A stretch of 63,703 nt of DNA, the filler included, from Octopus bimaculoides (taxonomy: Eukaryota): the NCBI RefSeq assembly GCF_001194135.2. It is 4 parts of 4 records of this genome, joined end to end, with 100 filler letters (N's around TTAATTAATTAA, not from the genome) between each part and the next. Parts side by side here need not be neighbours in the genome. Positions count along the whole stretch, not along the records: positions 1 to 17,072 come from NC_069009.1; 3 more parts are not named here. One strand, written 5' to 3'. Below the pieces are notes generated by a model. The model saw only the letters and a list, made by a program, of their open reading frames with translations, did not search any database and was not told the origin of the DNA. Shown here one piece after another: positions 329 through 12,705 of this stretch. A program made the position numbers and the translations under genes. How positions within the stretch are numbered: position 1 is the stretch's first letter; every line of letters starts with the position of its first letter.

Positions 329-418
329 GAGAACGTGTCGAGTGAAATGTTATAAAACCGTGACCTACAAGCAGTCACGAAAAGCGTGGTGTTTTTTAAG
401 AAGATGTACAAAATACAG
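329..418 (+). CDS. Exon 1 (first visible) of EMI + cbEGF protein: N-terminal part of EMI-like domain
   Basis: Acceptor tttgtttccag|G at 327-328 after a pyrimidine tract; donor AG|gtaaat at 419. 90 nt, phase 2/2, reads RTCRVKCYKTVTYKQSRKAWCFLRRCTKY and joins the next exon in frame (AG+T=Ser). Not in the ORF track. Confidence 0.85.
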
Positions 419-671
419 GTAAATAAGAAGCCACAGTTTCTGGTATTTATATCTTTCTATAGTGAGTAAACTTTTGATATAACGGCATCCATAATTACAA
501 AATGTCTAAGATAACGGCATTTTTGTCTCTTTCCACCATTTTGGAATCGATATTCATCCATCCGTCCTTCCTTCCATCCGCCCATCCATCCATCAATACA
601 CCAATCGAGTCATCAATTCATACAAACATACGTACATACGTACATACATACATACATACATACAAAAATTA

Positions 672-800
672 ACGGAATTTCGTCCGTCTTTATGTTCTAA
701 GTTCAAATGTCACAGAGGTCGACTTTGCCTTTCGTCTTTCGGGATCGATAAAATAAGTACCATTTGAACACAACTGTCGATGTAATCGATTTAACCCTTT
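672..800 (+). mobile_element. tRNA-derived SINE family B, 5'-truncated
   Basis: Shares gttcaaat..gaggtcgactttgcctttc..tcgataaaataagtacc..gtcgatgtaatcga with the copies at 26640-27300 and 62125-62310. Confidence 0.75.
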
Positions 801-1123
801 CCAATATTTACTGGTCCTGAGCTAAAATTTTAACCAATATTCTAATATTTCTCTGTGTGTGTGTCTGTCTCCCTCACTCTCTCTCAGTCTATGTATATAT
901 ATATATATATATATATATNNNNNNNNNNNNNNNNNNNNNNNNNNNNNNNNNNNNNNNNNNNNNNNNNNNNNNNNNNNNNNNNNNNNNNNNNNNNNNNNNN
1001 NNNNNNNNNNNNNNNNNNNNNNNNNNNNNNNNNNNNNNNNNNNNNNNNNNNNNNNNTATATATGTCTAGGTATACTCGTATATATATGCGTGTGTGTGTG
1101 TGTGTATACATATATATAGTGTA

Positions 1124-1478
1124 GGCGCAATGGCCCAGTGCTTAGGGCAGTGAACTCGCGGTTGTATGATCTCTGTTTAGATTCCTAGATCGGGCGTTGT
1201 GAATGTTTATTGAGCGAAAGCACCTAAAGTTCCACAAGGCTCCGGCAGGGGATGGTGGCAAACCCTGCTGTACTCTTTCGTCACAACTTTCTCTCACACT
1301 TTCTTCCTGTTTCTGTTGTGGCTGTAATTCAAAGGGCCAGCATTGTCACACTGTGTGTTACGCTGAATCTTCCCGAGAACTACGTTAAGGGTAAACGTGA
1401 CTGTGGAGTGCTCAGCCACTTGCACGTTAATTTCACGAGCAAGCTGTTCCGTTGATCGGATCAACTGGAACCCTCGTC
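1124..1478 (+). mobile_element. tRNA-derived SINE family A
   Basis: tRNA-like A-box head (ggcgcaatggcccagtg..tagg). The 3' body (aattcaaaggg..ttaatttcacgagc..gttccgttgatcgg) is shared with 43130-43442 (-) and 50865-51180 (+). Confidence 0.75.
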
Positions 1479-1506
1479 GGAGTAAATGTGCTAAGCAGTG
1501 TTTACG

Positions 1507-1786
1507 TATAATCACAATTTAGATTACTGACAAGTCAGTTTAGGAACGAACGGGGAAACACCCCATTCGGTCAGAGTCGCCCTCTCTCGGGAACCTGGAG
1601 TCAATAATCTCGCAACATCGATATCTCAGATTCCCGAGAGAGAGGGCGACACTGAACGAATGGGGTGTTTTCACACCTATGTACTATAATAATGATTTTT
1701 TTTCTCCACGGTAACTGCAGCGTACTTGCCTTTAGCAATTGAAATATGTGACAAACATATTTCAACTAATCTAAATTGTGATTACA
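1507..1786. mobile_element. MITE-like element with 18-bp terminal inverted repeats and an internal long hairpin
   Basis: TAATCACAATTTAGATTA (1509-1526) vs TAATCTAAATTGTGATTA (1767-1784); internal imperfect inverted repeat 1555-1672; TA-rich flanks. Confidence 0.6.
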
Positions 1787-2289
1787 TATATATATATATA
1801 TGTATGCTGGACCGCTGAAATCTACGATTTCTTTTGTTCATTCTCTCTCTCATAATTTTTTCTTATTCCTTTCTGTTGAAGAGCGTAGGCTCGAAACGTA
1901 AAGGGCTTTTTCTTTTTCTCGAGCGACAATCTAATACACTTGCTTGTTGTTCGTACACTTGTCTTGTGGCCACCTGATCGACCAGACAATCGGATCTTGC
2001 TATATATTTTTTATCACGATACACTTTGCATCATTTTAGCATATTTATGATGGCATCCCAATGGCTAGGCGATTCATTAAGTTTTCGACGCCATGTTGTT
2101 ACCTTAATTGTTATGAGAATGAATGTGCACGTGTATATGTGTGTATGTATATGTACGTTTATGTCAGTGTGAGTCTGTGTGTGTATGTGTGCTTGTATGT
2201 GTGTGCGTGTGTGTGTGTGATTGCCTGAAACGATTATCATTGTGTTCTGTTTATATATTCTGCTATTCCATTATTCTTTCTCTAAACAG

Positions 2290-2366
2290 TTTGAAATACA
2301 GGAAATATAGTACAACCTGTCTCAAATGTTGTAAAGGATGGACTGGCGTTCCCAGAAAGTGCAGAG
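2290..2366 (+). CDS. Exon 2: C-terminal part of EMI-like domain (CCKGW motif)
   Basis: Acceptor ctctctaaacag|T; donor G|gtaagc at 2367. Reads LKYRKYSTTCLKCCKGWTGVPRKCR. CCxGW/Y is the hallmark end of EMI domains. Phase 2/1. Confidence 0.88.
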
Positions 2367-10217: not shown

Positions 10218-10365
10218 AGAGCATGGACACTGCACACATCCTACGCAAAACACTTTCAATACAGTAACCATAAGAGCATCACAGCAAACCACAGCACATA
10301 CCCAAGGCACACAGAGCTGCGCTCGGTAGTGAAGTGAAAGCACGTTATAAAAATAAAACTACTGA
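10218..10365 (+). mobile_element. Second, very short 3' copy of the same R4/Dong-like family inside the first copy's tail
   Basis: Repeats ..gcacacatcctacg..acagcacatacccaaggcacacagagctgcgctcggtagtg..actg from about 10000-10136; flanked by (AAT)n and (AAC/AAT)n. Confidence 0.8.
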
Positions 10366-10439
10366 ACAACAACAACAATAATAATAATAATAATAATAAT
10401 AATAATAATAATAATAATAATAATAATAATAATGGTTAC

Positions 10440-10900
10440 ATACTTTACTACAAGGACATCCATTTTGGTGAAGAGGACGAGTTCTCTTCGAGGGATGGAG
10501 GGAAAGGAGTCGGGTTTATTTTGGGAAATTAAAGGTTTAGATATAACAGAAGAGGCCAGAACAGAAAAGGTTTCCGTTCGTAGAGGAGCAATATGGCTTC
10601 TCCCGTTTTAGAAGAAAGTTTTAGGAACCATCTTTTAGTATTTGAGAGAGAGAGAGAGATAAACTAGTTGCGGTGAGATCTCCGTATGGACCCTTAATCC
10701 ACGAGGTGAAAAGAAGTGAATATGGACAGAAGACTAAGGATGTATCTGTGCAGTGATTTTAAGGGTGTGTACGAAAGAGTCAGATATGGTTAGAAACGGG
10801 GTATAGGTGAAGGGATAATGTGATGAAGGAAGAGCTGAGGGTTAATATGGAGAGAAAGTACGAAGTCTCGGCGAGAACCTTAGAAAAGGAGTACGCTTCA
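10440..10900 (-). mobile_element. Possible degenerate L2/CR1-type LINE 3' fragment
   Basis: Purine-rich plus strand; minus strand only loosely resembles LINE ORF2 C-termini. No clean motif. Confidence 0.3.
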
Positions 10901-11000
10901 GTGTATAGTGACTAATGTAAAACAATTACAAAACCAATAATATAAATCTTATTAGTTCCTTATTTATATGTTCAATGTTTATTTCTCCTTCACATTTCAG

Positions 11001-11117
11001 ACATCAACGAGTGTTTAAGGAATCCTTGTCCTTCTGGTTCGACCTGTCACAACTTCCCAGGCTCCTACCGTTGTGCATGTAAAAGAGGTTACTACTTTGC
11101 AAATAACACTTGTATTG
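11001..11117 (+). CDS. Exon 6: calcium-binding EGF module 4
   Basis: cttcacatttcag|AC ... G|gtaagt; 117 nt, phase 1/1. DINECLRNPCPSGSTCHNFPGSYRCACKRGYYFANNTCI. Confidence 0.95.
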
Positions 11118-11394
11118 GTAAGTAAACTATAAAAACTAACCCAGAAGAGCAAAAATAAATATTCTAAGTCCACATTGGTTTACCAAAATAGTTTGTGGTG
11201 ATTGTTTAACCCTAGGTTAATAATGATCCGGCAGGTTTAAAATATGTAGTTATTTAGTCAAGATAAGGTGATCTATTATTTCAAATATACCACCTGTGTT
11301 ATTAAATAGACGATCATACTTTTGTACATGTAAACAATCATTGGTTCTTTCCTGCTTTTGTGTATAAATAACATTTATTTATTTGTTTTAACAG

Positions 11395-11511
11395 ATTACA
11401 ACGAGTGCAAATATAAAGGAAGATGTGACCAAATCTGTATCAATACTCCCGGATCCTACTATTGCCGCTGTAATAAGGGTTATGAAATATTTAAGAATCG
11501 TTTTTGCGTGG
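11395..11511 (+). CDS. Exon 7: calcium-binding EGF module 5
   Basis: tgttttaacag|AT ... G|gtaagt; 117 nt, phase 1/1. [39 protein letters not shown]. Confidence 0.93.
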
Positions 11512-12472
11512 GTAAGTTCATCATTTCTATATAATATTTTACGCAACACGCGCGCGCGCCACATATTGTCCTTTCTATCCGTAATAGAACAACATCTACT
11601 CTGTCCAGTTCCACATTACCAGAAGGCCCTTTATCTCATCCTTCTGACACGTGGTTGTTCAATCTGGTCTTNNNNNNNNNNAATACTCCCGGATCCTACT
11701 ATTGCCGCTGTAATAAGGGTTATGAAATATTTAAGAATCGTTTTTGCGTGGGTAAGTTCATCATTTCTATATAATATTTTACGCAACACGCGCGCGCGCC
11801 ACATATTGTCCTTTCTATCCGTAATAGAACAACATCTACTCTGTCCAGTTCCACATTACCAGAAGGCCCTTTATCTCATCCTTCTGACACGTGGTTGTTC
11901 AATCTGGTCTTAAAGGGTTCTTCCTTTATACCCGCATTTTGTACCTTCTTAGACACCTTCAGATTATTGGAGACAGCCACTGTCACATATATAACTATTT
12001 CTCTATTGCTTTCATTATTACGAAAGCATGTGACATTACCTCAATATCAAAGCCTCTTTTTGTACTGGGTTTAGGCAGTTTACTTAAAGATTTTCTAGCC
12101 CTTATTTAACATCTGAGTGACGTAAACTCACAGCTTTATAAGGACGTGTGTAAATAGTGAAAGAAACAACTACACAATATAACATCAACTGGAAAGTTCT
12201 AGAGAAGTGCACAAACAGCTGAAAGTTAGTGGGAGCTTTAGACTCTGTATAACAGAGAAACGGATGATACTGAATGAATCGCTCATCCCAGACGCATACC
12301 GAGATAATAAGCATGATAATGTTCCATTTTAACATCATCAGAGCAATTTTAAAATTATACGGCTGGTTAGGTATCCCATAAATATAGGGAACGACTAATT
12401 TCTATCGTATATATTGTTGTTTTTTGTTATTTTTTTTTTACTTATGTTTGTTCTTTTCCTACTTATTTTCAG

Positions 12473-12705
12473 ACATCAACGAATGTAGGTGCAACAATGG
12501 TGGCTGTCCTTTCCCCTACAGATGTATTAACAGACCCGGACACCACTACTGTGATTGCCCCTTCGGGTTTGGAGTTAAAGGGAACATGTGTCACCTTTTG
12601 ATACCTCAAAAGAACTTGAACTTTACTCTCCCCAATAATCCAACTGTCATACCAAGAATGAAGCCACAAGTACATTCCACAACGTTGGCACCAAATAAAA
12701 GTTAA
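12473..12705 (+). CDS. Terminal coding exon: EGF module 6 plus Pro/Thr-rich C-terminal tail
   Basis: Long pyrimidine tract then ttttcag|AC. DINECRCNNGGCPFPYRCINRPGHHYCDCPFGFGVKGNMCHLLIPQKNLNFTLPNNPTVIPRMKPQVHSTTLAPNKS ends at TAA 12703-12705; AATAAA follows downstream. Confidence 0.92.

Follow-up and report, generated by a model that had tools for sequence, protein, structure and literature searches.

What does the gene at the start of a 63,703-nucleotide stretch of Octopus bimaculoides DNA encode, and what could its product be for? The window, by which we mean this whole stretch at its full length, opens with sequence from NC_069009.1 (positions 1 to 17,072), and the gene region lies on the + strand at positions 329-12705; positions 1-328 and the sequence downstream were scanned as well. 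An initial annotation had described here a hidden gene of eight exons for a highly cationic, Tyr-rich protein comprising an EMI domain followed by six calcium-binding EGF (cbEGF) modules, devoid of a membrane anchor and presumably secreted. Our analysis indicates that the gene is very probably real and intact, its product being a secreted member of an Octopus family of cbEGF proteins.

The eight exons splice in frame into 328 residues with a TAA stop at 12703-12705, exactly reproducing the proposed product. An acceptor AG preceded by a polypyrimidine tract was found for all eight exons and a GTAAG or GTAAA donor for exons 1-7. The entry phases are 2,2,1,1,1,1,1,1, with every EGF module encoded by a symmetric phase 1-1 exon, the classic pattern for such modules. 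The individual exons are as follows:

329-418, + strand: exon N-A, second exon of the full gene, entering in phase 2; first 30 residues of an eight-Cys N-terminal module, (K)RTCRVKCYKTVTYKQSRKAWCFLRRCTKY; donor GTAAA.
2290-2366, + strand: exon N-B; remainder of the N-terminal module, SLKYRKYSTTCLKCCKGWTGVPRKCR, with the CCxGWxG signature; canonical splice sites; 77 % identical to the orthologues.
4634-4750, + strand: cbEGF1, phase 1-1; Pfam EGF_CA; 87-92 % identity to the orthologues.
6429-6545, + strand: cbEGF2, phase 1-1; Pfam EGF_CA/cEGF; canonical sites; 62 % identity to the orthologues.
7528-7647, + strand: cbEGF3, phase 1-1; highest Tyr content of all modules (6 of 40 residues); 83-85 % identity to the orthologues.
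11001-11117, + strand: cbEGF4, phase 1-1; contains an NNT sequon and is the sole module with an O-fucose-type site (C2-x4-T-C3).
11395-11511, + strand: cbEGF5, phase 1-1; complete in the first copy of a duplicated segment.
12473-12705, + strand: terminal exon; cbEGF6 with a seventh Cys (DINECRC...), a 37-residue Pro-rich tail HLLIPQKNLNFTLPNNPTVIPRMKPQVHSTTLAPNKS with an N-glycosylation sequon, and the TAA.

Using tblastn, each exon matched annotated Octopus proteins in the same order with E values of 1e-8 to 1e-37 (the terminal exon aligned to residues 166-242 of O. sinensis XP_036369522, termed P0003, with 74 % identity and E 9e-37). Pfam EGF_CA scored 133.7 bits against a cut-off of 27 (E 2.4e-39) in 6 stretches, bearing out six modules of the calcium-binding type. 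Together, the EGF_CA score and the ordered exon matches place the gene model far beyond chance. Recounting the 328-residue product yielded 63 Lys and Arg, 18 Asp and Glu, and 25 Tyr, identical to the earlier hand counts, along with 45 Cys and an isoelectric point (pI) of 9.44. The lack of a membrane anchor holds likewise, as no transmembrane or glycosylphosphatidylinositol-type hydrophobic end could be identified in this product (maximal 19-residue Kyte-Doolittle mean of 0.69). Besides the eight exons and one artefactual duplicate, neither strand of the piece carries extra EGF, transmembrane or alternative terminal exons, and Rfam and tRNA scans of the piece gave no matches. The open reading frame track indeed shows the gene as fragments only, as expected of a spliced eukaryotic gene in a bacterial-style list of reading frames.

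The window was compared with the O. sinensis locus L001, the O. vulgaris locus L003 (OX597839.1:29839293-29940494) and a further O. vulgaris locus, L002. It is collinear with L001 and L003 through exons and introns, with 74-93 % DNA identity across the collinear segments. This identifies the gene as the syntenic orthologue, in another Octopus species, of both O. sinensis XP_036369522 and the gene that comes first within the O. vulgaris model CAI9741405 (P0002). The amino acid identity to the syntenic O. vulgaris orthologue is 75 %. Exon N-A is 71-84 % identical to O. vulgaris CAI9741403 (P0001) and the L003 orthologue by tblastn, and its flanking intron shows 85 % DNA identity to L003 10731-11353. 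The nearest database proteins are CAI9741403 (81 %), CAI9741405 and XP_036369522, all of which were automatically named 'fibulin-1-like'. The gene is thus hidden in a relative sense only: databases already contain predicted orthologues and paralogues from O. vulgaris, O. sinensis and O. bimaculoides, with misleading names assigned automatically.

The model in the window is 5'-incomplete: exon 329-418 is entered in phase 2, and the piece does not include the exon for the signal peptide. From L003 we rebuilt a nine-exon orthologue, consisting of a 5' exon and eight exons equivalent to those of the window, with identical EGF6, tail and stop. Its exon 1 (L003 10001-10173) encodes the signal peptide MKNLVLFLFVFVVGVWVTEG and a 38-residue acidic linker, and ends in AA, completing a Lys codon with the next exon, which fits the phase-2 start at 329. 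Since base 1 of the window aligns to L003 10731, the 5' exon is expected ~560-730 bp upstream of base 1; tblastn detected no match to the signal-peptide exon in bases 1-328 or elsewhere in the piece. Of the upstream exon or exons anticipated by the initial annotation, the orthologue thus reveals one, for which the piece itself yields an expected position only. Judged by its relatives, the full gene is composed of nine exons, the first of which would encode the signal peptide and a short acidic linker. The presumed secretion gains indirect support from the conserved signal peptide with which the orthologues and paralogues begin. At the 3' end, the stop at 12705 marks the true C-terminus, with the same EGF6, tail and stop in XP_036369522, the O. 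vulgaris locus and the paralogue CAI9743508 (P0005). A downstream transmembrane exon used in place of this stop was not found: the sequence beyond it contains only repeats and mariner-like relics, and tail and stop are kept in the orthologues, P0005 and P0011.

The nine-exon structure can guide the annotation of this family, in which public models suffer from truncation, chimerism or wrong names. In XP_036369522 the 5' third is missing. CAI9741405 is a chimera spanning L003 10001-91202, which omits the exon at 11062-11154 as well as the true terminal exon at 41282-41514 and continues into a second EGF gene 19 kb downstream (L003 60-80 kb). As this second gene possesses its own CCAGFVGSVDGC motif, at least two related genes are arranged in tandem at L003. 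CAI9741403 ends in an odd 27-residue extension, of which residues 329-341 (SSNNISVNSGIFQ...) match a minus-strand repeat frame with 85 % identity. This repeat is located at 16017-16055 of the window on the minus strand, with an inverted copy in an O. sinensis intron (L001 15065-15939), and the last exon of the CAI9741403 model is probably repeat-derived.

Two irregularities were observed among the exons. The structural Tyr of O. sinensis EGF1 (L001 9906-10022) is replaced by Cys (DRGCTMGRREC), reflecting either an extra unpaired Cys or a sequencing error. Furthermore, the protein encoded by the EGF4 exon (11001-11117) is 92 % identical to the paralogue P0001 but 69 % to the syntenic orthologue, with local DNA identity falling to 74 %. 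This pattern suggests either gene conversion on the scale of a single exon or divergence of the tandem copies within one lineage.

Module architecture, family and surface chemistry

Each of the six EGF modules opens with D-x-N-E-C. The hydroxylation/Ca consensus C-x-[DN]-x4-[FY]-x-C-x-C is matched by five of them, the exception being EGF6 with its HHY spacing increased by one and its seventh Cys. Successive modules are separated by a single residue (C-V-D-I-N-E-C; C-x-D-x-N-E-C), the arrangement of rigid fibrillin and Notch cbEGF pairs. On sequence grounds, the protein belongs among the cbEGF tandem-array proteins. AlphaFold2 (AF2) modelling of the full-length paralogue P0005 resulted in predicted local distance difference test (pLDDT) values above 90 for the cbEGF array, and the best Foldseek matches of this model were Notch1 EGF20-24, NELL2 EGF1-6 and Notch EGF11-13. 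On the basis of this model and these matches, the array may bind Ca2+ and be rod-like and rigid. Along the tail the AF2 confidence falls; its pattern, LIPxxxLN[FY]T[LI]PxNxxV[IL]P[KR].., is conserved in P0005 and P0011 and keeps the N-x-T sequon across paralogues.

The Cys residues add up to 8 + 5x6 + 7 = 45, and because this number is odd, at least one thiol must be free or engaged in an intermolecular bond. The extra Cys of EGF6 (DINEC-R-C) is conserved in the orthologues, P0005 and P0011. No RGD or KGD motif is present in the window protein, and neither Fibulin_C (PF22914) nor the anaphylatoxin domain (ANATO, PF01821) was detected in it or in P0001, P0002, P0005 and P0008.

The N-terminal module (RTCRVKC...CLKCCKGWTGVPRKC) comprises 55 residues with 8 Cys, carries a net charge of +18 without any acidic residue, and is directly followed by the cbEGFs. 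It has the pattern C-x3-C-x13-C-x4,5-C-x13-C-x2-CC-x-GW-x6-C. Alignment with seven relatives revealed 12 invariant columns, including 7 Cys, the G and the W, with the CCKGW motif present in the window module, and a local hidden Markov model (HMM) of the module scores relatives at 90-97 bits. The initial annotation had assigned this part to an EMI domain, which we could not confirm. Pfam EMI (PF07546) gave no match at E<=10 in four isolated modules or four full-length relatives, with the EGFL7, EMILIN1 and MEGF10 domains scoring 59-69 bits as positive controls. A hhalign comparison of eight octopus modules with three Pfam-verified EMI domains reached 46 % probability (P 2e-4) over the C-terminal 34 columns only, corresponding to C..Y..YR....CCxGW.....C in the exon N-B half; the same stretch also aligns to the C-terminal half of ordinary EGFs by phmmer. 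Whereas an EMI domain has ~70-75 residues with 6-7 Cys, the octopus module has 55 with 8. 'EMI-like' would thus be a reasonable description of the CCxGW end of the module.

A PDB sequence search with the module profile yielded no match, and a PDB search with the EMI profile found no EMI structure. AF2 leaves the module poorly folded, with pLDDT values of ~60 in a construct with EGF1 and ~40 in P0005, and the Foldseek hits of the module-EGF1 model (3-sequence alignment, pLDDT 63) were rejected, as all were driven by the EGF. When 1.84 billion representative proteins were searched by HMM without any prefilter, the module came up in no more than five clusters, apart from a spurious hit to one repeat protein. 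The module-bearing clusters stem exclusively from O. vulgaris, O. sinensis and O. bimaculoides, in a database of limited coverage for squids, cuttlefish and Nautilus. The suggested lineage specificity is hence borne out, and on a narrower scale than the 'molluscan' originally proposed, the module having been seen so far only in Octopus.

In terms of its sequence features, the gene belongs to a small family, so far Octopus only, whose members combine a signal peptide, an acidic linker, the 8-Cys module and cbEGFs. The paralogues, 40-55 % identical to the window protein, include the full-length P0005 ('wall 2-like', 54 %), P0008, P0121, P0122 ('ADGRE2-like') and P0123 ('LTBP2-like'). They share the signal peptide, the linker, the CCxGWxG module and the cbEGF array, and in P0005 and P0011 a last EGF with 7 Cys and the tail are found as well. 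Six paralogues have almost the same signal peptide, with the consensus MK(N/S/K)(L/F)V.FL..FV.G.W.TEG. The linker, which for the present precursor is not visible in the piece, measures 25-240 residues in the paralogues; its net charge ranges from -4 to -82 across the family (-82 in P0121) and amounts to -7 to -9 in the closest relatives. In four of seven sequences KR or RRSR stands directly before Cys1, namely KR in this orthologue group and P0123, and RRSR in P0121. The family is arranged in tandem on Octopus chromosomes. As the paralogue pI ranges from 5.8 (P0008) to 9.5, extreme basicity is a trait of this orthologue group and not of the whole family.

The window protein carries a net charge of ~+45, i.e. 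+0.137 per residue, and 7.6 % Tyr. Among the best 120 cbEGF homologues the median charge per residue is -0.033 with a non-octopus maximum of +0.054, the median pI is 5.3, and the Tyr content has a median of 3.9 % and a 95th percentile of 6.1 %. The protein is therefore an outlier in both respects within this set, in line with the unusual basicity and Tyr content noted at the outset. Comparison with orthologues showed this basicity to be shared, with pI values of 9.2-9.5 in the Octopus 'fibulin-1-like' proteins and a net charge of +50 with 25 Tyr for the same region of the O. vulgaris orthologue.

Window protein and O. vulgaris orthologue differ at 80 positions (24 % of the residues), with all 45 Cys kept. 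Basic positions are shared in 54 cases, 9 being specific to the window and 16 to O. vulgaris; acidic residues are touched in only 4 of the 80 substitutions, and Tyr changes are balanced, with 6 lost and 6 gained, mostly Y<->F exchanges. The ratio of nonsynonymous to synonymous rates (dN/dS) is 0.56 at a dS of 0.27. These values suggest a gene that is fast-evolving yet constrained, with selection for the scaffold and the bulk surface chemistry: charge and Tyr content are held while the residues turn over, which would argue for selection on surface chemistry and not on one specific binding site. Between O. vulgaris and O. sinensis we counted 16 nonsynonymous to 1 synonymous changes (binomial p ~0.1), a suggestive but not significant ratio, from which no positive selection is claimed.

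Candidate functions

The reading that we favour, at a probability of roughly 40 %, is that of a polyanion-binding, cohesive or adhesive protein of an extracellular coat or matrix. After secretion into a Ca2+-rich fluid, the six cbEGFs would form a rigid rod of ~15-20 nm. The Arg/Lys-rich loops between the first and second Cys (CRKKPC, CRQRPC, CRRRVC, CKYKGRC) and the N-terminal module (+18) would furnish this rod with repeated basic patches and exposed Tyr. Such patches would bind polyanions, i.e. sulfated or acidic glycans, mucins, acidic proteins, among them the linkers of the family itself, and anionic cell or microbial surfaces, and the multivalent surface would also suit cation-pi and Tyr-mediated cohesion. 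The odd 45th Cys in EGF6 would permit an intermolecular disulfide and hence covalent dimers, and the acidic linker may serve as a charge-masking propiece or as a partner block for electrostatic self-assembly. The most likely role would then be that of a cohesive or adhesive part of a secreted extracellular coat or matrix, like Mfp-2, Pvfp-5beta and Sbp9. Basic Tyr/Lys-rich or free-thiol EGF proteins serve as molluscan adhesives (Pvfp-5beta, PMC9314366; Sbp9 and Mfp-2, PMC6244088).

Several points weigh against this assignment. By hand count, ~12 of the 25 Tyr fall on the two aromatic positions that are structural in the cbEGF consensus, leaving only ~13 'extra' Tyr, far below the 20 % of Pvfp-5beta, and the basic residues are dominated by Arg (38 R versus 25 K), whereas the mussel proteins are Lys-rich. 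Immune, reproductive or venom proteins would account for the raised dN/dS and the tandem duplication at least equally well. Moreover, the signal peptide is taken from relatives and is not present in the piece, the rod geometry, Ca2+ binding, disulfide dimers and propiece cleavage are features that we infer, and our literature search returned no paper on the family or its accessions.

The main alternative, plausible if unlikely, is a soluble immune or clearance bridging protein, which would bind anionic microbial envelopes or the phosphatidylserine of dying cells and hand them over to phagocytes in the manner of the Drosophila NimB proteins or MFG-E8. A variant would be a large, directly acting cationic antimicrobial with an acidic propiece that masks it before release. 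The combination of a signal peptide, a short CCxG[WY] module, EGF repeats and no transmembrane segment parallels the Nimrod-B proteins, secreted phosphatidylserine binders whose genes form a tandem cluster (PMC8419693). The octopus family is also in tandem and evolves fast (dN/dS 0.56; the 16:1 ratio between O. vulgaris and O. sinensis), and the succession of acidic linker, KR or RRSR and basic mature part resembles precursors of cationic effectors. The parallel is weakened, however, by repeats that are cbEGF and not NIM and by the missing Pfam EMI match, the 16:1 ratio does not reach significance, and with paralogues down to pI 5.8 (P0008) cationicity is not family-wide.

Distinctly doubtful is a matricellular regulator of the fibulin, EGFL7 or LTBP type that would reside in ordinary extracellular matrix and bind other matrix proteins, integrins or Notch-type receptors, with the basic surface acting as a heparan-sulfate anchor. 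In its favour, sequence searches outside Octopus lead to fibulins, fibrillins, LTBPs and EFEMP1 as best matches, solved structures come closest in the cbEGF arrays of Notch, NELL, fibrillin and LTBP1, and EGFL7, also secreted, has the order EMI, EGF, cbEGF. Yet the octopus protein has no Fibulin_C or ANATO, no TB domain, no coiled coil and no RGD or KGD; its N-terminal module is Octopus-only, its charge lies far outside the range of those families, and a dN/dS of 0.56 contrasts with the normally slow evolution of ancient matrix regulators.

Returning to the adhesive reading, a rather improbable elaboration of it would be an Octopus-born 'block polyampholyte', in which an acidic Ser/Asp/Glu block of varying length and a polycationic, Tyr-rich, Ca2+-rigid EGF rod with one spare Cys assemble electrostatically, much like a coacervate, and are cross-linked by disulfides or Tyr into a cement or protective coat. 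If true, this would represent an EGF-based bioadhesive (egg-stalk cement, sucker or skin secretion) that evolved independently of Mfp-2, on the basis of an N-terminal Cys module for which no relative was detected beyond Octopus.

Another gland product, be it a salivary or venom component or a gamete or egg-coat recognition protein with a fixed signal peptide and a mature part whose target-binding surface would be under diversifying selection, appears very unlikely. Near-identical signal peptides preceding mature parts of pI 5.8-9.5, the tandem duplication, a possible exon-scale conversion and the raised dN/dS would agree with it, but no search revealed similarity to known cephalopod salivary toxins, and cbEGF rods would be unusual as toxins. 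Finally, a recently dead or never-expressed duplicate with a frame intact by chance or recency is extremely improbable: the first database search gave no protein from the exact locus and the public models are chimeric and truncated, but eight exons without stop or frameshift, canonical splice sites, 45 Cys and six Ca-binding motifs conserved at a dS of 0.27 with a dN/dS of 0.56, and synteny kept in three species all speak against it.

The gene illustrates how a genus-restricted, tandemly duplicated and fast-evolving secreted family keeps a presumably rigid cbEGF scaffold together with extreme positive charge and Tyr content. As part of an octopus secretion, the protein would invite comparison with the mussel EGF adhesives and become a candidate biomaterial; if immune, it would constitute a new type of cationic pattern binder.

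Assembly gaps, duplicated segment and repeats

The gene region contains three assembly gaps, all of them intronic and leaving coding frame and continuity unaffected, and one duplicated segment:

919-1056, no strand: gap in intron 1, falling within a TA microsatellite.
8043-8787, no strand: gap in intron 5, inside (AAT)n.
11672-11681, no strand: gap of 10 N in intron 7, between two perfect 230-bp copies.
11442-11671 = 11682-11911, no strand: duplicate; the copies start in the middle of exon 7, and the second repeats the 3' 70 nt of exon 7 and the intron start.

Intron 1 measures 1.9 kb in the window versus 13.4 kb in O. vulgaris, so its true length is uncertain and sequence is possibly missing; the O. 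vulgaris intron holds no family exon. The gap at 8043-8787 hides no exon, because L003 is contiguous across this site (36659/36660) and the relatives pass directly from EGF3 to EGF4, with no EGF between the two in any relative compared. As the 230-bp segment is single-copy in both O. vulgaris (L003) and O. sinensis (L001), 11442-11911 is a scaffolding artefact, in which overlapping contigs were butted and not merged. The duplicate gives rise to a phantom partial exon 7 (11682-11751) with its donor, the real exon 7 and its acceptor being whole in the first copy.

Beyond the stop codon, two candidate poly(A) signals were located, the motif not exceeding its chance frequency and the positions being a suggestion only:

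12894-12899, + strand: AATAAA, candidate poly(A) signal.
13224-13229, + strand: AATAAA, candidate poly(A) signal.

The presumed 3' untranslated region also contains a 36-bp tandem repeat (12981-13077), and (CT)n with an 18-bp tandem repeat follows at 15188-15360.

Repeats are abundant in the introns. Long (AAT)n tracts occur in nearly every one of them (2976-3058, 4515-4616, 5442-5671, 7343-7490, 7885-9067 and 10136-10433). Intron 1 harbours an element at 1509-1784 that resembles a miniature inverted-repeat transposable element, with 18-nt perfect inverted repeats (1509-1526/1767-1784) enclosing a 33-nt hairpin of 94 % identity (1556-1588/1638-1670). A dispersed repeat reminiscent of short interspersed nuclear elements (1057-1480) has many copies on both strands of L001-L003 with 72-89 % identity, and a family of ~130-180 bp, found in the window at 665-800 (+) and 6686-6866 (-), is present in L002 and L003 in dozens of partly tandem copies (74-87 %). 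One further dispersed element exists in two mutually inverted copies, 4001-4598 and 16712-17072, which match L002 32028-32594 (85-91 %) and L003 51780-52374 and give near-identical pseudo-reading frames (ESSACHQSDTG...). In intron 5 (9348-9596 and 10000-10433), a reading-frame fragment with a weak match to zf-RVT, a zinc-binding domain of reverse transcriptases, lies beside a 229-bp unit repeated 1.9 times, whose copies end in (AAT)n; the whole is best described as retroelement debris. Downstream of the gene, adjacent minus-strand reading-frame fragments at 14413-14982 resemble the mariner-type Transposase_1 below the threshold (PF01359; E 0.01 and 0.1) and look like a decayed transposon.

Comparison with known systems

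The closest counterparts are the Octopus 'fibulin-1-like' proteins XP_036369522, CAI9741403 and CAI9741405, which share the exon structure, synteny, 8-Cys module, six cbEGFs, tail, pI of 9.2-9.5 and Tyr content. Their name is wrong, because they have no fibulin C-terminal module: the true fibulins of the hit list carry Fibulin_C and/or ANATO, whereas the octopus C-terminus is the 37-residue Pro-rich tail. With fibulins, fibrillins, LTBPs and Notch the protein has in common the cbEGF consensus, the one-residue linkers and a predicted rod-like array, but it lacks a TB domain and has a pI of 9.4, while the fibulin, fibrillin, LTBP and Notch families are acidic (median pI of 5.3 in the list of best homologues).

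Draper and MEGF10 carry a transmembrane segment and EGFL7 a coiled coil, both absent from the octopus protein, and orthology to these proteins is not indicated. The NIM repeat has the consensus CxPxCxxxCxNGxCxxPxxCxCxxGY and follows a CCxGY motif. CCKGW is present in the octopus protein, but every repeat is a cbEGF (D-x-N-E-C ... GSY-x-C-x-C) and none is NIM or a laminin-type EGF, and membership in the Nimrod group was rejected. Drosophila NimB1-5 resemble it in general layout, with a signal peptide, a CCxG[YW] module, EGF-type repeats, no transmembrane segment, a tandem cluster and a function as soluble binders (PMC8419693).

Mfp-2, Pvfp-5beta and Sbp9 are likewise secreted molluscan tandem-EGF proteins, which are either basic and Tyr/Lys-rich (Mfp-2, Pvfp-5beta) or rely on a free thiol in an EGF for cohesion (Sbp9). 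The similarity is a generic EGF likeness without orthology, and the octopus protein differs by a cbEGF in every module, by its N-terminal module and by its tail; compared with Pvfp-5beta, it has 7.6 % versus 20 % Tyr and is dominated by Arg. To our knowledge, octopuses make no byssus. With cationic and aromatic side chains displayed on rigid, disulfide-bonded scaffolds, the byssal EGF proteins nevertheless provide the best functional analogy for the surface proposed here (PMC9314366, PMC6244088).

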